In this document: positions 6,455-58,164 of the stretch, in pieces
Numbering within the stretch: position 1 is the first letter of the stretch
Layout of the letters: every line of letters starts with the position of its first letter
Source: Sphaerodactylus townsendi
Lineage: Eukaryota
Assembly (NCBI RefSeq): GCF_021028975.2
Contig: NC_059437.1
Coordinates: 32,240,001 to 32,304,000, forward strand
Direction of reading: 5' to 3'
DNA length: 64,000 nucleotides
Notes under the pieces: model-generated
Told to the model about the DNA's origin: nothing
What the model saw: only the letters and a program-made list of their open reading frames with translations
Database searches by the model: none
Program-made: the position numbers and the translations under genes

Positions 6455-28763
<22,309 letters not shown>

Positions 28764-33511: not shown

Positions 33512-36500
33512 TGGGTTTATAGACCGCCCTCCCCCGGAGGGCTCAGGGCGGTGTACAGTACAGATAGAGCACAATCAATTTAAAATACAATAAATAAGAA
33601 TTAAGATGGCTCTAATAAAAATAAACCCTACCCCATTAAAATGCAGCTTATAAAATTAATATTAATGTTAGCTCAAGATGGCGCCTGCTATCAATTCCCT
33701 CTCAGACATACATCAGAAAAGAAGGGCGGTAGGGGCCACATGATGTTACAGCAGCAAACAAAGGGAGGAAGGGGCCCCTATCAATGGCTAGTCTCCCCAA
33801 AGGCCCGGTGGAACAGTTCGGTCTTGCGTATATATGAGGTTTTAGTATATGAGGTTATGAAGAAAAAAATATAAATGGCCAGTCAAAGGCCAGAAGGTAC
33901 AAGGTGAGATGTAACCAGGTAACATTCAAATGTGATTGAGAGAAATACATTCTCATTCTGAATTTTATGGTCAAACATCAATGAAGGGCGCTACCTCTAT
34001 AGAAAGGCTCTTCTGCTGTGGTTATCCGAGTCGAACAAAACAAAGAAAACTATAAAAATACTAAAGGAAAAAGTTAAAAAACAGCAGCTGTGTTTTTTTT
34101 TCTGGCAGGATTGCCTGAAAATGTGAATATTTGAGGGAAGTTTCATCCTGAACTACCTGACCATATATACCCCCCTCAGCCCTGAGTATTTCTATTATGC
34201 TTAAGTGCCATTGAACACGAAGTCCCTTTTGAGTTGATTTAGAATCTTTCTGACATACGTAGCAGTTAAATGGGACACTTCCACATTACTGTCTGGTGTT
34301 TTAATGGTATGTGGAGTTGCAGTACTTTACTGTTCTGGAAAAAGAGACAGCAAATTAAATATAGCACTGTATTAACTACAACTAGTTTGCACAAAACACT
34401 TGGGGTGCCTTGAATAGAAGTTTGAGTTGTATCCATCTCCCTCATTTTCTTGAAATAGGAGGTACGTGGATGAAGGTCTTATTGGATCAGGCTTGGTGGG
34501 AAGAGTTAAGTCACCCCCCCCCACACACACACACTGTTTTCCAGAAACATCCCTGGGGACCTGCTGTTTGCCCCATTACAGCAAAAAATACTTGTACTCC
34601 TGTTAGTGACTAGTACTCCTATTAGTGTCTTTCCTTTGTCTGTTGATCCTTTTCTTGTAATGTGTGCAGGTGTCCATACGAGCACTAGGGTTTGAACCCA
34701 CAAAAGAAGAGCTCAAGAGAATAGTAGTCGAAGTGGATAAAGAAGGAACTGGGCAAATTGGCTTTGATGCCTTTTATTCTGTGATGACTCAGAAAATGGT
34801 ATATCTGTAAATTCAACACTTGTCTATAGTTAGAAATTTTCTTCTTTAAGAGTCTTGTGGTAACACGGGGACTGTTGGACATACTGTGGCTGATAGCTTA
34901 ATGGCTTAGCAATGCCCCCTTTGCTGATGGGTGCATACATTGGGGGGGGGGGGGATCAGAGCAAGGATGAAGCAAAGGCTTTCATGGCCAGAATCACTGG
35001 GGGTTGTGGGTTTTCCAGGCTGCATGGCCATGTTCTTGTAGCATTTTTCTCCTGATGTTTCGTCTGCAACTGTGGCTGGCATCTTCAGAGGATCTGATGG
35101 TAGTAAATGGTTCTTTCTCCCACCCTGGACATTCCACAGGTATATATACTCCACTTGCTTTACTACCATCAGATCCACTGTGTAGCAAAGCCTTTCAATG
35201 TAAAGGAAACAGCAGCAGCTGAGCACCAGTAATTCTTGTGTTTAGTCTTTGAGCTTGAGAGGTGCAGAAAGATCATAGAATTTGGAGATTTTGGTGTGAG
35301 TCTTTGTCCTCCATTTCTATCTTCAGTCACAGATTGATCCCAAAGAAGAAATCCTAAAAGCCTTCAAGCTATTTGAGGACAGTGAGAGTGGCAAAATCTC
35401 TTTCAAGAACCTCAAGCAGATTGCCAGTGAGATAGGAGAAAAACTGACAGACGAAGAGTTGCAGGTGAGTGTGGCGGTGCTGTCTTGCTTTGATGGCTGG
35501 AAACTGGCTTTTATCCTTCAGGCATGAGAGCTGCAGTTCCGTCTCTAATTAAATAGAGGGAAGGGCTCTTCCTGTGTCATCTCCCCACCTCACTCTTCAC
35601 ATTTTCTTGGTGCAAAGTGTGTTTGTGTCTGTGTGTGCATGAGTAGCATGGAACCACTTGGCCATGTGTCTTCTTCCCCAAAAGGGTTGAATTAGCTGAT
35701 TGCTGTGTTTGTCAAAGGGGGAAGAGCAAGATGAGGAAAGGGGTCCTTCTCTTGCCTGATGGAGGAACCCCAGAATTCTTCACACAGTGGGAAGGCTTAG
35801 GCTGTTTGCCAAGCAGTAAACCTTGTCCAGGGTCACCAGCTTGTTCTATAAGAGGAGCTATTTCTGAGTATTGAAAACCATCCTATTAGTCCCACCTCTA
35901 CCCAGCAGGTTACCAAGTTTTGTTCTGTCCAAGAGACAGAATGTGGATTAGGAAGAACTCCAGAAACGAAGCCATCAGCTAAGCAGCACAGAAGAAAATC
36001 CCGTGAAATGAAAGTTTATTTTCCCAGGCCTTTTAGGGGATGTACAAGCGGTTCTGCAGCAACTGGTGAAACTACCTGTAGATCATGAGCTACCCGTTGG
36101 ACCCTGTTGTTCTGCATTTGTATGAAAGTGGGTTTATTGTTTCAGAAGGCCAGTCTGTGCGGTTAACTTCTGAATGGCTTGAGGAACTGAGGATGGCTTT
36201 GAGCACTCCTCTAAAGTACATAAACCTATCAGGAATCACGTGGGAAGGGGAGGAAAGAGTGTCTCCTTCAGCCCTCTTGTTGACCAGCTGCAGGAGCACT
36301 GCTGCTTTTTTTGGCTGTCAGGGGTGGGGTGGGGAGAATGTGGGATATCTGCAGTATTCTATAAGGGGCNNNNNNNNNNNNNNNNNNNNNNNNNNNNNNN
36401 NNNNNNNNNNNNNNNNNNNNNNNNNNNNNNNNNNNNNNNNNNNNNNNNNNNNNNNNNNNNNNNNNNNNNNNNNNNNNNNNNNNNNNNNNNNNNNNNNNNN

Positions 36501-36798
36501 NNNNNNNNNNNNNNNNNNNNNNNNNNNNNNNNNNNNNNNNNNNNNNNNNNNNNNNNNNNNNNNNNNNNNNNNCCAATCAATTGATCAGTCGATCAATCAA
36601 ATCTAATCTGTCTATCCCTGTCTGTATATAAACTTATATACGCACACACCCCTGCTACTGTTATGCTCTCTGTGAGCAATGCTGCAGTCTGACTCCTTTT
36701 CTGCCCTGCAGGAAATGATTGATGAAGCTGATGTGGACGGAGATGGGGTGGTGAATGAGCAGGAGTTTCTGAAGATACTGAAGAAAGTTGGCAGTTAA
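33062..36798 (+). CDS. Divergent centrin/caltractin paralogue (CETN2-like exon structure): 33062-33220, 34670-34798, 35327-35464, 36712-36798; start probably ATG at 33095 or in an unseen upstream exon
   Basis: ...[32 protein letters not shown] / [32 protein letters not shown]...MTQKM / [16 protein letters not shown]...[25 protein letters not shown] / [28 protein letters not shown]; four EF-hand positions; all introns phase 0; first donor is AAG|GCAAGT. Confidence 0.9.
33449..33508. repeat. (TTA)n microsatellite, tail of a minus-strand LINE fragment extending to about 33826
   Basis: About 20 TTA units followed by GGGTTTATAGACCGCCCTCCCCCGGAGGGCTCAGGGCGG. Confidence 0.85.
36370..36572. other. 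Assembly gap
   Basis: Run of N. Confidence 1.
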
Positions 36799-48105: not shown

Positions 48106-51100
48106 ATGGCGTCGCTGCACGGGGCCGTCGGGCTCCTGGCCATCGCAGCCGGTAAGAGCAGCGGCTGCTGCCCCGACGACACACTCGCCTTCTGGCCGAG
48201 CCGGGGCGCCGGAGACTCAGCCTGGCCAGCGGCCCCAGCTCCAGGCGTCCCGGGGCCAGGGTCAGAGACCCGGCAGGAGGGAGGGCTCCCGACGCGCCTC
48301 CGCCGGCTGGAGAAAGCGGCGCAGCTCCGTCGGTTGCGCCTCTGGACCTCGCCGGGGCGCTCCTTCTGCGCTCTTCAAGCATTTGGAGTCACGTCGGAGC
48401 AGAGTTTCGTCCCCCCCAGTCCCCACCGGAGTTCCAGCCTTTTACATCCATTACTCGGCTGGCAAAAACTGTCCTTCCGCTTGCCCCCGTTTCCTCTGCA
48501 TCCAGCAGCCTTGTCGCTTGTTTTGCTGGGTGCCCCTCACTTCTCGCTTGGCTTCCAGACTCCCCCCGCCTTCCGCTGCTGCTGTTGTTGATGCTTCTCC
48601 TTCCCTTTCAAGTTTGCCTTTATATCTCGCTTGGGGCAATCGCATAAAGGCATGGCAGCTGGCAAAGGCCCGTTCCCTCTTGTCCGTTAAGGCTCCTCTC
48701 TGTCTCTCCCTTCCAGGATCTCTCTTGCTGGCCGTCCACTTCTACAGCTTCACCAGGCCGACCCCCCTGATTCCCAGCACTGCTCTTGGAGTCCTTCTGC
48801 TCATTTTGTCGCTTCTTCTGGCATACACAGGTGAGACAATGGTCGTTGCTGTCTTGGAAGGCAGCTCTGGAAGGCAGGCTGTATTTTTTCATGGAACTCT
48901 TGATGCCGGTGCATCTTTGCCAATTTAACTGCCTAGTAGTGCGTGGGGAGGGGGCAGAGCTCAGCGAGAGAGCATCTGCTTGGCATGCAGAAGGTCCCAG
49001 GTTCAATCACCGGCATCTCCAGCTGAGATGATCAGATAGTGGGTGCTGTGAAGGGCCTCTTCCTGAGATCTTGAGGGGCTCTGCTGACCAGAGCGGACAA
49101 TGTTGACCTTGATGGACCAGCAGCCAGATTCAGCGCAAAGCCTCTTGATATGTGTTGATGTGGCCCACAGATTTCAGCTCCCAACTGGGGAAGCTGGTTA
49201 CAGTCCTGTAATCACATGTGCCAGGTTACAGCAGCAGGCACAAGTTTTATTTGTTTATAACTCCCCTTTCTCTCCAGCAAGAACACAGAACACCTTAAAT
49301 TCTCCTGTCCTCCATTTAGTCCTCACAGCAACCCTATGAGGTACATTAGATTGTGCTACTGACCCAAGGTGCTGCAGAAAACCCCATAGTAGAGTGGGGA
49401 TCCAAACTGGCATCTTCTAGTCCAGGGGTCTGCAACCTGTGGCTCTCCATAGTCTACAATGCCCATCAGTCTCTGCCAGCATGCTGGCAGGGGCTGATGG
49501 GCATTGTAGTCCATGAACATCTGGAGAGCCACAGGTTGCAGACCTCTGTTCTAGTCTAACACTCTAACCAACGTACCCCACTGGCTTCAAGCCTAGTTTC
49601 CATGTGTGGTTTCCAAGTATGAAGCTTAGTCTCTTTAATTGCCTGGGGGTGTTGTTAGCTGGACCAAGAAGCAGTTTTAAAAATCTGTGGCTGAAGATTC
49701 TGTTTATGATTGAAACTTTGCAACCCTACAAGTTACAAAATGGCTGTCCTGCCCCCCTCCCCTATCAACAGGAGTGCGGAAGACCTTCCAGGATGCTTCC
49801 GTGTTTGTGTCGCTCTGCCTGACGGTTTCGGTGCTCTGGTGCGGTTATGGAGTGATCCAGATCCTGGCTGGGCAAGGAGTCCTCTCCAGCACTGCTGACC
49901 TGCGCAATGCAGCTGTTCCTGGACTGGCAGCCTTCAGTTTGGGGCTGCTTCTCATCAGCCTGGCGGGCTTTCTCCAGAAAGAGGTCCCCCTCGCCATGAT
50001 AGCGTTTGCCATTTCTCTGGCCTGCGCCCATGAAATTGCAGCCTTTTACAACGAGGCCTTCAGAACTTCTGCTGTGGCCTGCAATTATGTGATTGTCTGC
50101 TTTGTCGGGGGCTACGTTGGGTTGGGGAGGATTCTCTTTTTTCTAAGCCGTGAGAAATTTGTCCTGCCCGGCACAGACCTGGTCAAGAAAGAGGCCGGCA
50201 ACTGGCAGCACCCAGACGGCAGCACGAGCTCAAACGAGTTGGCTGCGTTTGGTTTGATCCTGAACATGCTCTCGGCCAGTGTCTTGGGCTGCAGGCTCCT
50301 GGGGGTGACTGATGACCTCTTTGTGGGGCAGGTCCCCTGGCTGTGGGCAGGAGGGATCTACCAGTTTGGGACCTCTATCTTCTTCTATCGTTCCCTGAAT
50401 GCACTGGCTGCCACTTTTTGGGGCTTCACCTCCCTCCTGAAGTTTGGGGAGGGCTATTCCTTCTTGATCTTGCTCTGGGTGCCCGAAGAGCCCATCTTTC
50501 CCATTCCATTCTCGGTGGTTTTTGCTATCCTCTTTACTGTCTTGGCCCTTTTCGTTGCCATCGAAAGCCTGGCCGATGGCGTCTACCTGCTATTCTACGT
50601 GGCCTTGTGCATTGCGCTTGCCTGCAGCCCACGAGGCTTTTTGGAAGGTGGCCCTCAGGGCGTGGCAGTGGGCATTTTTGCGGCCTCTGCTCTCCTGGCT
50701 CTTCTTCACCTTTACAATGAGAATGCGACAGTGAAAATCCCAAGGGGGAAGGGAGTGCTCAAGGATTTGCTCTCCCGCCTCCAGGTTTGCAAGCTCCAGG
50801 AGGGGAAAGACCTCCACGCCCCTTACCTGGGTTACTCCAAATATGCTGATGCCGAAGTACTGGGCTATGCCTGCAGCGTGCTGGCTTCTTTTGCCATGAC
50901 TGTGGCAGCAATGCCCAACTCCCCTCTTGCTATAATCGTCATACCTTGGGTGGTGGTTGCGGGGGGACTCTTGAAGCTTCTGTGCGGCTCCATGGCTTTC
51001 TCCCGAGGCAAAACTTTAGAGAGCTGTGCTTTTATTCTCTATGGGTTCATGTGGATTATCTGGGGCATTACCAGGTACGGGGGGCTGTACAGTGCTTCGC

Positions 51101-54100
51101 GGGGGTTCCAGGTAGCTGTGGGTATTGTCTCGCTCATGCTTTTCAATGCCTTCCTCATCCTTTGCACTCTCTTCCTGAGCATCTCCTGGTTCATCTACTC
51201 GCTCACCTTTGAGCTCATACTCATCAGCTTCTTGTTGGATGCGGTTGGTGCTACCTCCGCTGGCTATGACATTGCTGTCACCATCATTTTCGGCTTGGTC
51301 AGCTTCTACTGTTTCCTGACTGCCCTGGTCAACGGCACTTTTGAGAGGCCTCAACTCCCCATAGGACGACCCATTGTGAGGCTCAGTGGCTTCGGGGGAG
51401 GAAGCAGCAAGTGCCTTCACCTGCCAGCCAGGAAAGCGTCGTCAGTCAAGCAAGTCGCAGGTGAGGAAACAGTCCAGCCAGTAGGGCTATTTTTTTGCCC
51501 TTAGGCAGAATTTTGGTCATCTACCTTTGTTAAAATTCCTTCCAAAAATTCCTTCCACACGCCTTATACTGAGTCAGGCTCTAACACTGCAATCCCTGGG
51601 AGGAGGGTGGGAGGAAGGGCTGTGAAACCGACGTGACTCTGGTGTCATTGCCAGCCCATATGGCATAAGTGGCACTAATGCTACTGCAGGGGTCACTTCC
51701 ACTAATGCCAGGGAGCCACTCAGCTCTGTGTTGCTGAGTGCCATTGCACTGCTGCTGCACCGGTATTCCTTTGTTGCTGGAGCAGGTGCCAGCACCGATG
51801 GCTTCATTCTCGGGGGCAGAGCCAGCTTTAGTTGGCTTCCTGAGGTGTATCAGCCTGGGAATGCCCCCTTGTACTGGCATCAACTTATACCATCTAAAAG
51901 TGTGACACAGCCCACTGGGGAGTTTCAAGGGAGCTGGGAATATTTCCCCCTTTTCTCACATCCCACACTGCTGAAAACCTCTTTGGAGAGGGTGAAACTG
52001 TGCCATCCCCAGCCACTGCAAAACTATCTCCCCGCTGTGAATTGGACTGTTAGTCTGTCCAGCTCAGTACTGTCTACTCTGAGTGACAGCAGAACTGCAG
52101 GCTTTCAGGTGGAGGGTCTTTCACACTATTTACTAACTGATCCCTTTAACTGTGCGATCTGCCTTGAGTCTCACAGAGAAAGGTGGACTATAAATAATGT
52201 AAATAAATAAAATCTGTAAAAAGTTGTGATGTTGGGGAAATCAAACCTGGGACCTTTGGCATGCAACACTGATGTTGTACTGCTGGCCCCAACTCCCGTC
52301 TCATCCCGTCTCATCTGATGCTGTGCCCACAGGCCTGTTCACCAGATTGCACAGAGAGCTCCTGTTTCGTCAGCAGAGTTGGATTTCTGTTCTGATTTTG
52401 GACACTTAGATCTATTTTGCCACCTCAGACAAAATTACCCCATTATATACACAACTTACATGAGCTCAGTTGTCTGTTGCTACTAGTCCTTCCACGAATA
52501 AGCTAAACAGCGGCTGCCTAGTTTATAATGTACTAATGGACTGAAAGAGTCAAGGCATACTGCACTCCCTGTTCTGTGAGTCTGTGGCCTGGCATTGTTA
52601 ATTGAGGAGCTCATCCTTTGATTGTAGAGATAATGAAGAAAGGGGGCATCTGCGGGATCCCCACGGACACGGTATATGTGCTTTCAGCAGCCTGCAATCA
52701 ACCTGAAGCTGTGGAGAAGGCTTACAAGTAAGGGGTTAACTCTCCATCCAGAATTTCTCTGGAGATCTAATGCATGCACGGGGCGGCAGGGTGGGGCATC
52801 ATGTTTCTTGGGTCTCGTGGTCATGGGCAGAAACCTTTGCAACATACCTTCTCTCTGCAGCTGCCACACTCCCACACAGAATCTCTTCCAGAAGCTCACT
52901 GATAGTCTCCCTTTGGTTATCATGTAGCCAGATCTCATCCCTTTGAACATGCTTAGTTCACAAGTGTTTGTATGTGCATCCACATAGCTACTCGCCATGG
53001 GATCGGAGTAACCCGCCACAACTTCACACATAGTTCCTGTTTCTCATTCACATGGCACCATCCAGGACAATATTTTCATTAGCAGTCCTGGAAGTGACAT
53101 AGGGGATATTTTTGGTTCCAGGAGGAGAGAGAGTGGATTGTGTTGCTGTGGTTGCCATGATCAAGGAGTGTGGCAACTTCCAAGGTTTGGCTGAGGTCCT
53201 TGATTCAAATTTGCCTATTGATAGACTTATTGAACCTCTTGGTTCTCTCTCTCTCCCTAGCACAAAGCAGCAGGCTCAGGACCGTCCCATGTCCCTCTGG
53301 ATTTCAAGTTTGAAACAACTGGAACCAGCCAAGCATCTATTCAACCCTGTCCTCTGGGATTTCATGGATGCTGCATGGCCATCGCCTATCAGCCTGGTCA
53401 TTCCCAGGGGTGAGAGACTCTCCTCATTGCTGTCCTGATTTCTCTTTAACCCTTCCCTGTTTTGTTTTTTTGTTTTGCATCCCACTTCTCTGAGTGAATA
53501 GAATAGAATCTTTATTGGCCAAGTGTGATTGGACACACAAGGAATTTGTCTCCGGTGCATATGCTCTCAGTGTACATAAAAGAAAAATACATTTGTCAAG
53601 AATCATAAGGTACAACACTTAATGATTGTCATATAGGTCTAGTAAGCAATCAGGAAACAATCATTAGTAACGAAACCATAAAATGTAAAATCATAAAATA
53701 AAATGAAATAAAATGTAATGTAATGTAATGTCAGCACAGGCTATAGTCATACAGTCATAAGCGGGAGGAGATGGGTAATAAGAATGATGAAAAAAAGTAG
53801 TGCAGTAATTATATAATAAATATATAATAAATAGTTTAACATTATCGAGGAAATTATTTGTTTAACAGAGTGATGGCATTCGGGAAAAAACTGTTCTTAT
53901 GTCTAGTTGTCTTGGTGTGCAGTGCTCTGTAGCGACGTTTAGAGGGTAAGAGTTGAAACAGTTTATGACCAGGATGCGAGGGGTCAGTAAATATTTTCCG
54001 CAGCCCTTTTGACCTGTGCAGTATACAGGTCCTCAATGGAAGGCAGGTTAGCAGCAATTGTTTTTTCTGCAGTTCTGATTATTCTCTGAAGTCTGTGTCG

Positions 54101-57100
54101 ATCTTGTTGGGTTGCAGAACCAAACCACACAGTTATAGAGGTGCAGATGTCAGACTCAATGATTCCTCTGTAGAACTGTATCAGCAGCTCCTTGGGCAGT
54201 TTGAGCTTCCTGAGTTGGCGCAGAAAGAACATTCTTTGTTGTGCTTTTTTGATGACATTTTTGATGTTAGGTGACCATTTTAGGTCATGAGATATGATGG
54301 AACCTAGAAATTTAAAGGTCTCTACTGTTGATACTGTGTTGTCTAGTATTGTGAGAGGAGGTAGGATGGGAGGGTTTCTCCTGAAATCTACCACCATTTC
54401 TACGGTTTTAAGTGTGTTCAGTTCTAGATTGTTCCAGTGGCACCACGAGGCTAGTTGTTCAACCTCCCGTCTGTATGCGGTTTCATCGTTGTCTCGAATG
54501 AGACCAATCACTGTTGTATCATCTGCAAACTTCAGTATTTTAACAGATGGATCGTTTGAGATGCAGTCATTGGTATACAGAGAGAAGAGAAGTGGTGAAA
54601 GTACACAGCCTTGGGGGCCCCCTGTGCTCATATTACAAGTGTCTGATGTAATTTTTCCTAGCCTCACCTGCTGTTTCCTATCTGTTAGGAAGCTTGCGAT
54701 CCACTTACAAATATGCTCAGGTACTGCTAGCTGATTTAGTTTGGTTAGAAGAATGTCCGGTATGATAGTATTGAATGCTGAACTAAAGTCAACAAAGAGG
54801 ACCCTTGCATAGGTCTTTGGCGATTCAAGATGCTGTAGAATATAGCGCAAAGCCATATTAACAGCATCATCTGTCGATCTATTTGCTCGGTATGCAAATT
54901 GCAAGGGGTCCAACAGTGGATCCGTGATGGTTTTCAAATGATACATCACTAGCCTTTCAAAAGTTTTCATAACTACAGATGTTAGAGCAACTGGTCTGTA
55001 GTCGTTCAGTTCCTTGATGGAAGGCTTCTTTGGCACTGGGACGATAGTGGAGTGTTTGAAGCAGGAAGGAACATAGCACATCTCTAGTGATTTGTTGAAG
55101 ATTTGGGTGAAGATGGGGGCCAATTGGACAGCACAGACTTTTAAGCAAGAAGGTGTTATCTTGTCTGGGCCTGGTGCTTTTCCAGGCTTCTGTCTGTGAA
55201 ATAGATCTTGCACTTCCTTTTCTGAGATCACCAGGGGTTGTAAACCCAATGAAATGGGTGCAGTTGTAGGAAGTTTGGCTATTGTTGGTGCATCTGAAAT
55301 AGAGGTTGTGGAGAAAGGTGACTGTAGATTATTTTCAAACCTGTGGTGCTCCACTTAAGTGGTGCTTAAGTGGTGCTTAAGTGGTGCTCCACTTAAGGGC
55401 CGTTGCTGTCATTTTCTCTTCAGGATGGGAGAGTTTTCATGCTGATTAACTCTTTTTCTTTCCAATGTAGGTGAATGGGTGGACTACCTGGGCATGAAAG
55501 ACTCTGCTAAATATGTTGGTACCCCTCAGAGCGTAGCTATTCGCATCCCAGATTGCTCAGTCACTACCCATCTGATTGATTTGGTGAGCTGAATCTAGAA
55601 CCTCTTCAGTATGTCTGCCTCTGTGTTTGTGAAAGACCATGGAAAGATTGGTGAGCAATCCAGGAATGTATTCTGTACCACTCACCTCTTAAATAGCATA
55701 TAGGTGAAATCTGTAAGGTTTGCAGATTTGAATTCTACTTCAATGTTTTTTTCTGCACCAGACTTCTCAGTTCTAGAGAAGTGTGAGCTTGGTTTATTTT
55801 CAAAAAAGTCTCCTCATAAGGATAGGAAGCTTTTTAAAAAGAATGTGATTTTTATTTAATCTGACTTCCATGACAGAGCCAATACACAGGGAATTGTCTC
55901 ATTCTAGGATTTGCTCTGTTATGACAGGAAAAGCTACCCTCTGTAGATCCAGCCTCGTGCATGCAATTCTTTTTGATCTTATGAATAGCCGCATTCTCTC
56001 ACTTTCTTTCTCGGTCTTTAGGTTGGCCCAATTACTGTCACATCTGCCAATCCTACAGGAGAAGCAGACACTACTCACCACAACCAGGTGTATGCCAAGC
56101 TGGGAAACAAGGTAAATTCTATGCAAATGCTTGCTCTTTTGGCAGTCCCTCTTGGAACTTTAGGGTACCAGTGCTTAAGTTCAGTGTACTTTGGGGAACT
56201 TTGGGGGAGTCAAATGTCTAGAACAGGAGTCTCCAATGTGATGCTTGTGGGTGCCATGGCTCGAACCAACACCTTTCCTGGGCCCTGCTGCCTAGTGTTT
56301 CTAGAAAGTGGATGGATCAAATGTCTTTTTTTCCCCAGCAGGGTATCTGACTGGCTGTTAGAAAGCTTATTGGCTGTGCAGGGTTTTTTTTAAAAAAATA
56401 GTACTTTGGCAGCAGCTATCTTCAAAGCACAAGAACCGTAAACAATATTTTATTTTTAGAAGGCATCCTGTTAAATGGAGTTTCTGCCTGCAGTGCTAAA
56501 AGTTACAGAATTATATGTGACCTTACTCTGGCTCCTATGGCAGCCATTTTGTGCTTGCATCTACCACCCTGTGACACACTTCTAAAAGTGCCTGCAGGCT
56601 CAGAAAGGTTGGAAGGCCTTGTTCTAGAAAGACCCAAAATATAAGTGCTGCTGATTTGCTCAGAATAAGAGCCTTTTATTTCACTGGATCCATTCACTAC
56701 AGTTGTGCGCAGGACAGGAGTGGAAACATCTGAGCCTTTTCAGTTTACCTACCTTCTTTCCCTATGAAAAGAAGAGTGGTCCTTTCCGCACAGCCAAAAT
56801 GAAATGTCCTGCAGACATTTTAAAAAGATCTGTTTTGGCTCTCTATGCTGAGCCATGGATCTTCCACCAGTTTAGTCTGGCTTGAACTCAGAATACCAGA
56901 GCACCATGAAGGCAGGATGTATTTCTTGTATAAATTGCCAGAACATGTCTGGACAGAGCTTCTTCTCTCCACTAAAAAAAATCTGAGACACAGTGACGAT
57001 TCTTCTCTAGGTGGATGCTGTTCTTTGTGATGGACCTTCTCCGGAGAACATAGCCTCCACAGTGGTGGATTGCACCAAGATTGAGAGTGGGAACATTGGG

Positions 57101-58164
57101 TTCTTTAGAGTCGGTCTTGTCCCCAAATCCCAGGTCAGCATTGTCTCATCGATCCTTCTCTTGTACAATCATCTTGATGTGTTAATTCAGCCACATTTAT
57201 TGTTTAAAATTATGTATTGTAAAGTACAGTGCAATGTGTATAAAACGTTTGCAAGCCTGATAAAAGTTCTACACAAAGATCGTAGGAGGGGAACCTCTGG
57301 GCACTTAAGCAAAAATGTAAACATGTTGGCACTCCAATATATCTGCCATCCAGGGGCACAGAAAGTGTTGTCCTTCTTTTTTAAATAACTTTGAACCTAC
57401 CTTCTTCCAAACAGCTTAGAGCAGCACGCATAATTCCTTTCCATTTTGTCTCACAACATCCCTGTGAGGGAGGTTAGAAAAAAATGACTGGCCCAAAGTC
57501 ACCCAGGTAGTTTCAGTAGGAATTTGAAATCAGGACTCAGTGTGGCATACTGAGGACTACACACTAAGCACTGGATTTCTGGAAGGACAAACTCATATTT
57601 TTTCTCGCAATCATACATGTAAACTTTGCTGAGAACAGTCTCACTTGCTAATGCAACACCCCTTTGCAGTCTACAGAGCTTGCCATCTGCACTTGCAGCT
57701 CACTGTCCGACAGCATTGCTTTGCCCAGGATTCTAGAAAACGAAGCATTTTATAGGGCTTCAGTTCTACTGATGACTTTTGCAGTCAGAGTCAGAGTGTG
57801 GCCCTGTGCAGCCTGTGCATGCATCAGAGCAGCAGGTGTGCCTTGAGAGACCCGGAGCTCTTGAAAACGGACACCGGGCTTCATTCAGAGGAGATTAAAC
57901 TAGGAAGGGAGTCCCTAGATCCACCGAACATCCATTGAATCTTGCATTCTTTGTCTCTGTTTTCAGGTATTACAGATTCTGGAGCAGGTCCAAAAAAGAC
58001 ACCAGTCAGGCCACATCAACAGCACCCTGGCTCTGGAGGGCAAGGAAGAGCAGCATACCCTGTTAAAAGCCTCCCTCATCAATGGTGCTCATGTTCAGAG
58101 GAAGTCACCAACATCGTATACTAACAGTGCATTTTGTGTTGATGAGAGAGATGAACCTCAGTGA
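48106..58164 (+). CDS. Uncharacterised 873-aa polytopic membrane protein: three SatP/YaaH/Gpr1/Fun34-like repeats plus C-terminal Sua5/YrdC-like domain; exons 48106-48151, 48717-48830, 49772-51460, 52628-52727, 53261-53409, 55471-55583, 56022-56111, 57011-57133, 57967-58164
   Basis: Nine GT-AG exons give a 2622-nt open frame. Membrane part: YADAEVLGY...AGGLLKLLCGSMAFSRGKTLESCAFILYGFMW...[21 protein letters not shown] aligns by eye with E. coli SatP. YrdC part: GGICGIPTDTVY, AWPSPISLVI, AIRIPD, TSANPTG, STVVDC, FFRVG. TATAAA at 48068-48073; AATAAA cluster 59188-59254. Confidence 0.88.
48951..49160 (+). mobile_element. tRNA-derived SINE (Squam3-like); further minus-strand copies at about 32690-32880, 47280-47420, 52060-52280
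   Basis: AGCTCAGCGAGAGAGCATCTGCTTGGCATGCAGAAGGTCCCAGGTTCAATC tRNA-like head followed by a body shared among the copies. Confidence 0.7.
49423..49548. mobile_element. Palindromic hAT-type MITE (family of 259 element)
   Basis: TSD TTCTAGTC on both sides; CAGGGGTCTGCAACCTG...CAGGTTGCAGACCTCTG. A half copy lies at about 40074-40145. Confidence 0.8.
53496..55342 (-). mobile_element. 5'-truncated Rex1/Babar-type LINE (RT domain) in intron 5 of the AceTr-YrdC gene
   Basis: ORF 55354-53984: KAPGPD, NDYRPVALTS, QFAYRANRSTDDA, FVDFSSAFNTI, PQGCVLSPLLF, KFADD; one frameshift near 54000 continuing to ...SFFPNAITLLNK*; 3' AATAAA and (TTCTA)n tail at 53496-53515. Confidence 0.88.

Follow-up and report, generated by a model that had tools for sequence, protein, structure and literature searches.

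The 64,000-nucleotide stretch of the Sphaerodactylus townsendi genome analysed here (contig NC_059437.1; hereafter the window) carries the gene LOC125442380 on its forward strand, and our analysis indicates, with a probability of roughly 0.8, that the encoded chain belongs to the vertebrate 'Ato/AceTr-YrdC' family, in which three tandem SatP-type six-helix domains (18 transmembrane, TM, helices) are followed by a Sua5/YciO/YrdC-like domain. The annotated product, an 'uncharacterized protein' of 873 amino acids (aa; P0001), was recovered when the translated large open exon was used in a word search, and is 100% identical to the window. It was placed by tblastn on nine exon blocks, and a nine-exon GT-AG model computed with a local script reproduces P0001 residue for residue as the sole such solution; the gene is intact in the window. 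The three units delimited in a preliminary description of this DNA (48106-50172, 50230-50748 and 50842-51366) coincide exactly with residues 1-187, 207-379 and 411-585 of P0001. The coding sequence of unit 1 is interrupted by two introns, and most of it, together with units 2 and 3 and the linker as far as the YrdC boundary, lies in one exon of 1689 nt.

The triplication, the fusion and the idea of a dimeric ring, all of which the preliminary description had put forward, are already known from the in silico study of Ghasemi et al. (bioRxiv 10.1101/2025.05.26.656167, May 2025; iScience 2026;29(7):116467, PMC13316224, June 2026), the one work with both terms in a full-text literature search. These authors superposed the AlphaFold model of an Oryzias melastigma protein (A0A3B3D9A3) on SatP with a template modelling score (TM-score) of 0.82, and hypothesized in their Fig. 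7C that a pair of protomers assembles into a ring of six domains resembling the SatP hexamer (PMC13316224). The gecko gene is one more orthologue, sharing the architecture of about 900 aa with three Gpr1/Fun34/YaaH six-helix domains and a C-terminal YrdC domain, with no essential difference; in the vertebrate clade to which it belongs, units 1 and 2 are more diverged and only unit 3 is detected by Pfam.

Unit 3 (50842..51366, aa 411-585) is the most SatP-like part of the chain. Pfam PF01184 matched residues 410-574 with 23.6-24.6 bits (E 2-4e-5), below the cut-off of 25, and NCBIfam AceTr_1 matched the same unit with E 1.9e-5. A profile of 40 orthologues matched SatP (PDB 5zug) over the full SatP length (E 0.033); a six-sequence profile of the TM region gave no match in the PDB. 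In a Foldseek search of the PDB, the six best matches of the gecko model were all SatP chains, with TM-scores by target of 0.70-0.76, and VIA-align placed SatP chain 5ys3_B on model residues 409-586 (Z 18.8; root-mean-square deviation, rmsd, 2.5 Å over 170 residues), followed by the urea channel UreI on the same unit (Z 14.0). Against a target profile of 16 single-domain AceTr proteins, the hhalign probability for unit 3 was 99.7% (P 4e-27, 183 columns), and the control, in which the columns of the target were reversed, gave P 0.10.

The relationship of units 1 and 2 to AceTr became visible with deep profiles. A profile restricted to the membrane part, used in an exhaustive search of representative sequences, yielded 67 relatives, including proteins of molluscs and amphioxus that match collinearly across the three units and bear PF01300, single-domain AceTr proteins of 200-300 aa that were found via the unit 3 part of the profile, and a second vertebrate group, clade B, which a follow-up word search revealed to be a large clade of fish paralogues ('si:ch211-153b23.3') distinct from the clade of the gecko protein (clade A). 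With the deep profiles, unit 2 matched AceTr with a probability of 96.9% (P 1.7e-10, 173 columns; reversed-column control P 0.17) and unit 1 with 85.7% (P 5.5e-6, 178 columns; control P 0.12), the matches spanning each whole unit in register. Unit 2 also matched unit 3 (96.9%, P 1.6e-10). The unit 1 profiles of clades A and B matched each other at 96.3%, and unit 1 of clade B matched AceTr at 99.6%. Furthermore, the unit 3 part of the membrane profile matched all three units of one clade B protein, and Pfam PF01184 detected unit 1 itself in three clade B-type proteins (two from fish, one from a scallop). In an ESM Atlas feature search, the clusters closest to units 1 and 2 all carried PF01184 (scores 0.85-0.86), which we take as a lead only.

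As a structural test of unit 1 we used a naturally truncated orthologue from the frog Discoglossus (P0131; units 1 and 2), 38% identical to the gecko protein. Its model, computed with a diverse alignment of 44 sequences, had a predicted local distance difference test (pLDDT) value of 83.8 and a predicted template modelling score (pTM) of 0.83. SatP superposed on unit 1 of this model (residues 5-186) with Z 13.9 and rmsd 2.7 Å over 172 residues. A Foldseek-independent scan of 48,161 PDB representatives with the frog model returned SatP (Z 13.6) and UreI (Z 11.4) as the top two matches, both on unit 1. By profile comparison, all three units can thus be regarded as homologous to AceTr, and in the predicted structures units 1 and 3 adopt the SatP fold. 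The claim of three tandem AceTr units in one chain is thereby upheld, by profile-profile comparison for every unit and by structure search for units 3 and 1; the proposed superposition of units 1 and 2 on SatP was obtained for unit 1, in the frog orthologue, and covers that unit only.

The helix content agrees with this domain assignment. Kyte-Doolittle hydropathy averaged over 109 orthologues showed about six hydrophobic segments per unit, and the AlphaFold2 model of the full-length gecko protein contained 18 long helices, six in each unit (6+6+6), between which long and short loops follow one another in the same pattern every time, so the anticipated 18 TM helices were recovered by both approaches. 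The modelled helices span aa 4-25, 36-59, 64-87, 94-121, 125-144 and 149-178 in unit 1; 207-226, 238-260, 264-289, 299-318, 320-338 and 348-371 in unit 2; and 412-430, 438-464, 468-489, 495-519, 524-544 and 552-576 in unit 3. With the N-terminus set inside, as in SatP, the loops on the inner side hold 22 lysine and arginine residues and those on the outer side 3, and since the positive-inside rule would place the more basic loops in the cytoplasm, a cytoplasmic position of the N-terminus, both inter-unit linkers and the YrdC-like domain is supported. Each unit would therefore have the six helices and the inward-facing termini of an AceTr protomer.

The positional motifs that the units share are in register with the AceTr family, as their original description implied. 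In the profile-profile alignments, GAVGL, AAFGL and EVLGY fall on the (NPA)PLGL position, IPSTALG, VPWLWAGG and IPWVVVAGG on the start of TM2, and EKFVLPG, TVKIPRG and RPQLPIG on the C-terminal 'ILPIG' motif of SatP. None of the units carries NPAPLGL(M/S), the AceTr signature that opens TM1: its equivalents read xxxx-A-V-G-L in unit 1, E-L-A-A-F-G-L in unit 2 and D-A-E-V-L-G-Y in unit 3, in which the Gly and mostly the Leu residues persist. Two further statements of the preliminary description, that this signature is degenerate throughout and that units 1 and 2 have diverged most, are both confirmed, the latter by the hhalign comparisons with AceTr and by the mean identity to the gecko protein, which is 73% in unit 3 and 87% in the YrdC part, compared with 65% and 66% in units 1 and 2, respectively.

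The residues that form the Phe-Tyr-Leu constriction of SatP (F17/Y72/L131) were mapped via an AceTr protein (P0168) and the hhalign alignments, and their conservation was assessed in 40 vertebrates. No unit holds the complete constriction, and the Phe is gone from all three, its equivalents being I, N or S; Tyr72 and Leu131 are kept together by unit 3 only. The three positions correspond to I13, V72 and L136 in unit 1, aliphatic throughout, with L136 in 38/40 species; to N218 (40/40), T273 (39/40) and Y329 (Y or F) in unit 2; and to S422 (39/40), Y477 (40/40) and L535 (40/40) in unit 3. In clade B of the fishes the constriction pattern is different again, and units 1 and 2 retain an EPxxLG motif. 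Purifying selection extends across all units and includes these unit-specific pore residues, a pattern in which the units differ from each other at the constriction positions, yet each is tightly constrained.

This pattern bears on whether all three pores work. Unit 3 might be the sole working pore, with units 1 and 2 serving as scaffolds whose pores are closed or lost, giving a two-pore dimer or a one-pore monomer. Such an arrangement would be consistent with unit 3 being the most AceTr-like and best conserved TM unit, with the all-aliphatic triad of unit 1, and with the loss of the Tyr72 equivalent from units 1 and 2. However, near-invariance of the constriction-position residues in those two units (N218 in 40/40, T273 in 39/40 and L136 in 38/40 species) is more than a scaffold requires, and units 1 and 2 of clade B retain EPxxLG and match AceTr at >99%; we consider a single working pore possible but doubtful. 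The preliminary description had left open whether the pores had become specialised or structural, and the conserved, unit-specific residues fit specialisation better than decay. Under the three-domain reading, each unit would retain a central pore of its own, in the manner of SatP and UreI, and the pores would be non-equivalent: that of unit 3 would retain the Tyr and Leu of the SatP constriction (S422/Y477/L535), that of unit 2 would be polar (N218/T273/Y329) and that of unit 1 all-aliphatic (I13/V72/L136).

Several observations weigh against the three-domain reading. Pfam searches of ten clade A orthologues at E up to 10 detected unit 3 and gave no match to units 1 and 2, and hhalign on profiles of 109 close orthologues (effective number of sequences, Neff, about 2) found no significant similarity between any of the units. 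This null result is due to shallow profiles rather than to a lack of homology, and it was resolved once mollusc, amphioxus and fish clade B sequences were added; the internal repeat predicted by the preliminary description thus failed with close orthologues and was recovered with deep profiles, most clearly as the unit 2 to unit 3 match given above. Even so, the probability of unit 1 against AceTr reached only 85.7%, and the case for the fold of unit 2 consists of its helix count and sequence profiles. Confidence in the full-length gecko model was middling (mean pLDDT 58, about 60-88 over most of the membrane part), and the mapping of SatP residues relies on remote alignments. Plain acetate conduction by the gecko protein would also be uncertain, because the NPAPLGL motif and the constriction Phe have been lost in all units.

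SatP and UreI are hexamers with one pore per protomer, and by analogy with them neighbouring units of the gecko chain would pack like neighbouring SatP protomers, such that one chain would make up half a ring and two chains would close a six-domain ring bearing two cytoplasmic YrdC domains. We give this packing of adjacent units and the closure of the ring by a dimer an even chance. The same domains could instead be assembled differently, as a closed monomer with pseudo-threefold symmetry or as another oligomer. The angle between units is left unconstrained by our results, a complex prediction of unit 3 (aa 400-590) with unit 1 (aa 1-195), run without alignment or controls, gave a score of 0.01 that is evidence neither way, and the hexamer idea derives entirely from the analogy with SatP and UreI. 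On the other side, both of these proteins, the sole solved relatives, are hexamers, the short linker between units 1 and 2 (19 aa) suits side-by-side neighbours, and the pTM of 0.83 for the two-unit frog model suggests a defined packing between units; a different assembly therefore seems rather improbable. The cargo would likely be a small anion or neutral solute of carboxylate or bicarbonate size, which is a reasonable guess, and the YrdC domain would consume or sense something linked to the flux through the pores. Any connection of this flux with what YrdC-type enzymes use as substrates (bicarbonate, threonine, ATP) is speculative.

PF01300 matched the YrdC-like domain at aa 617-793 with 118.5 bits, and the orthologue profile matched Sua5/TsaC structures in the PDB with E 4e-20. 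No other part of the protein is as well conserved: the mean identity of this domain to gecko is 87%, and 91 of its columns are invariant among the 40 vertebrates. It was poorly modelled in the full-length AlphaFold run (pLDDT 25-35 over residues 715-807), probably owing to a shallow alignment. Complete clade B proteins of 879-892 aa were found on Logan contigs of 2.8-3.2 kb (P0231, P0245, P0268, P0275 and P0298); contigs of only this length must be assemblies of transcripts free of introns, an indication that one mRNA encodes the channel and the YrdC domain together in fish.

With three AceTr units and a C-terminal PF01300 match in 873 aa, the gecko protein conforms to the family architecture of about 900 aa. 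Its whole TM region is 59-86% identical to that of reptile, bird, amphibian, coelacanth, sturgeon, gar and platypus proteins, and it lies inside clade A, one of two vertebrate clades, which is monophyletic with a Shimodaira-Hasegawa-like approximate likelihood ratio test (SH-aLRT) value of 100. Ghasemi et al. (PMC13316224) stated that the family is absent from mammals and the fusion absent from protostome clades, and suggested horizontal transfer. In contrast, we found within the amniote part of clade A a platypus orthologue (P0110; 878 aa) that carries PF01300 and is 59% identical in the TM region, and the complete three-unit and YrdC architecture in molluscs (scallops, oyster, snail, chiton and argonaut) and amphioxus (P0139, P0141, P0143, P0307, P0318, P0155 and P0161). 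There was no therian protein among the 120 matches listed. In total the architecture recurs in several hundred proteins of vertebrates, amphioxus and molluscs.

This recurrence also bears on whether the repeat is an artefact, produced by a chance likeness of hydrophobic helices or by an annotation that fuses separate genes; the negative first hhalign comparisons on shallow alignments and the single unit detected by Pfam would fit such an explanation, which is nevertheless scarcely credible given the significant, full-length and in-register matches of the deep profiles with clean reversed controls, the structure searches that rank SatP first, the one 1689-nt exon carrying most of unit 1, units 2 and 3 and the linker to the YrdC boundary, and the renewed finding of the architecture in so many proteins.

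In a quick maximum-likelihood tree, clade A of the vertebrates and a set of mollusc proteins each formed a starred grouping, and the third starred grouping united clade B of the fishes with amphioxus and a single scallop protein; the tree was rooted at its midpoint and has long branches, such that these groupings need caution. The pattern agrees with an ancient origin in bilaterians no less well than with horizontal transfer, and it hints that the fusion, and perhaps also the duplication into clades A and B, is older than vertebrates. In Astyanax, the clade A gene (si:ch211-153b23.4, AMEX_G12829; P0121/P0314) and the clade B gene (si:ch211-153b23.3, AMEX_G12828; P0197) have consecutive locus numbers, which suggests that they are tandem neighbours. 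The zebrafish genes si:ch211-153b23.3 and.4 occur in RNA-seq gene lists without functional study. No clade B paralogue was detected in the gecko window by tblastn, every match falling on exons of the same LOC125442380 gene.

Extending the three-domain reading further leads to a picture that we regard as tentative and, taken as a whole, unlikely. The ring would combine three kinds of pore (aliphatic, polar N/T/Y and SatP-like S/Y/L), each fixed for hundreds of millions of years, and the YrdC-like domain would be coupled to a flux of small anions (bicarbonate or carboxylate). The architecture of three AceTr units plus YrdC and its split into two paralogues would both predate the divergence of protostomes and deuterostomes, being neither a vertebrate invention nor the result of horizontal transfer, and would have been lost in therian mammals.

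With SatP/YaaH of E. coli and Citrobacter koseri (PDB 5zug, 5ys3 and 5ys8) the gecko chain shares the six-TM fold (in unit 3 and, by way of the frog orthologue, unit 1), the C-terminal 'LP(I)G', the Gly of NPAPLGL, a Trp in TM3 (units 1 and 3) and the N-in/C-in topology. However, SatP is a single protomer of 188 aa that forms a homohexamer, whereas the gecko chain consists of three diverged and fused protomers with 12-18% identity to SatP, a degenerate NPAPLGL and an enzyme-like domain appended. UreI of Helicobacter pylori (PDB 3ux4 and 6nsj) has the same six-helix channel fold, as seen in its match to gecko unit 3 and, with Z 11.4, to frog unit 1; this likeness is structural and we claim no sequence relationship. 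UreI is an acid-gated urea channel built as a hexameric ring of single-domain protomers, each with its own pore. Fungal Ato1/Ady2 and other eukaryotic AceTr proteins (PF01184, TCDB 2.A.96) have a homologous 6-TM domain, but they consist of this one domain, in which the NPAPLGL, FLY and SYGFW motifs are conserved, and lack a YrdC domain.

The gecko gene thus belongs to a family of large membrane proteins, strongly conserved in sequence and functionally unstudied, that most vertebrates possess and therian mammals apparently lack; they join a microbial-type channel to an enzyme domain of the tRNA-modification type. Our additions to its description are modest. They comprise sequence-level proof that units 1 and 2 of the tetrapod clade, invisible to Pfam, are AceTr domains, a unit-by-unit record of constriction residues that provides targets for mutagenesis, and, from platypus, molluscs and amphioxus, hints of an older and wider architecture than that stated by Ghasemi et al.

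All exons lie on the forward strand of the window. In the GT-AG model, exon 1 (48106..48151) carries codons 1-15 plus one base of codon 16, comprising the start codon, the first half of TM1 of unit 1 and GAVGL, the remnant of NPAPLGL, which is in register with the PLGL of AceTr. Exon 2 (48717..48830, aa 16-54), supported by tblastn and the exon model, covers the end of TM1 and TM2 of unit 1 with the IPSTALG motif, in agreement with the modelled helices 4-25 and 36-59. Exon 3 (49772-51460) begins with the rest of unit 1 (49772..50172, aa 54-187), which includes TM3-TM6 and the C-terminal EKFVLPG according to the hhalign alignment with AceTr and the fold of the frog orthologue. The linker between units 1 and 2 (50173..50229, aa 188-206) is poorly conserved (32% mean identity to gecko), modelled with pLDDT <50 and predicted to be cytoplasmic, with 4 Lys and Arg residues in the loop 179-206. 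It is followed by unit 2 (50230..50748, aa 207-379), delimited by hhalign and the helix count, whose six TM helices carry the series AAFGL ... VPWLWAGG ... TVKIPRG. The linker between units 2 and 3 (50749..50841, aa 380-410) is rich in Lys and Arg and likewise predicted to be cytoplasmic, with a short helix at 382-388 in the AlphaFold2 model. Unit 3, with EVLGY ... IPWVVVAGG ... RPQLPIG, was recognized by Pfam, NCBIfam, hhalign and structure alignment, and the end of exon 3 (51367..51460, aa 586-616) encodes a conserved linker (76% mean identity), predicted to be cytoplasmic, that leads to the YrdC-like domain, the Pfam match of which begins at aa 617. This domain (aa 617-~810; PF01300) and a variable tail are encoded in the exon model by exons 4-9 (52628-52727, 53261-53409, 55471-55583, 56022-56111, 57011-57133 and 57967-58164), which are part of the same protein and lie beyond the range covered by the preliminary description.

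Two runs of N occur in the window, at 16330-16516 (187 bases) and 36370-36572 (203 bases), and represent assembly gaps or masked stretches. The intron between the YrdC exons 5 and 6 contains a fragment of a retrotransposon of the LINE (long interspersed nuclear element) type on the reverse strand (53987-55354), recognizable by a 456-aa reverse transcriptase open reading frame that matches Pfam RVT_1 with 116.7 bits and shows a short PF09004 match of a kind common in such reading frames.

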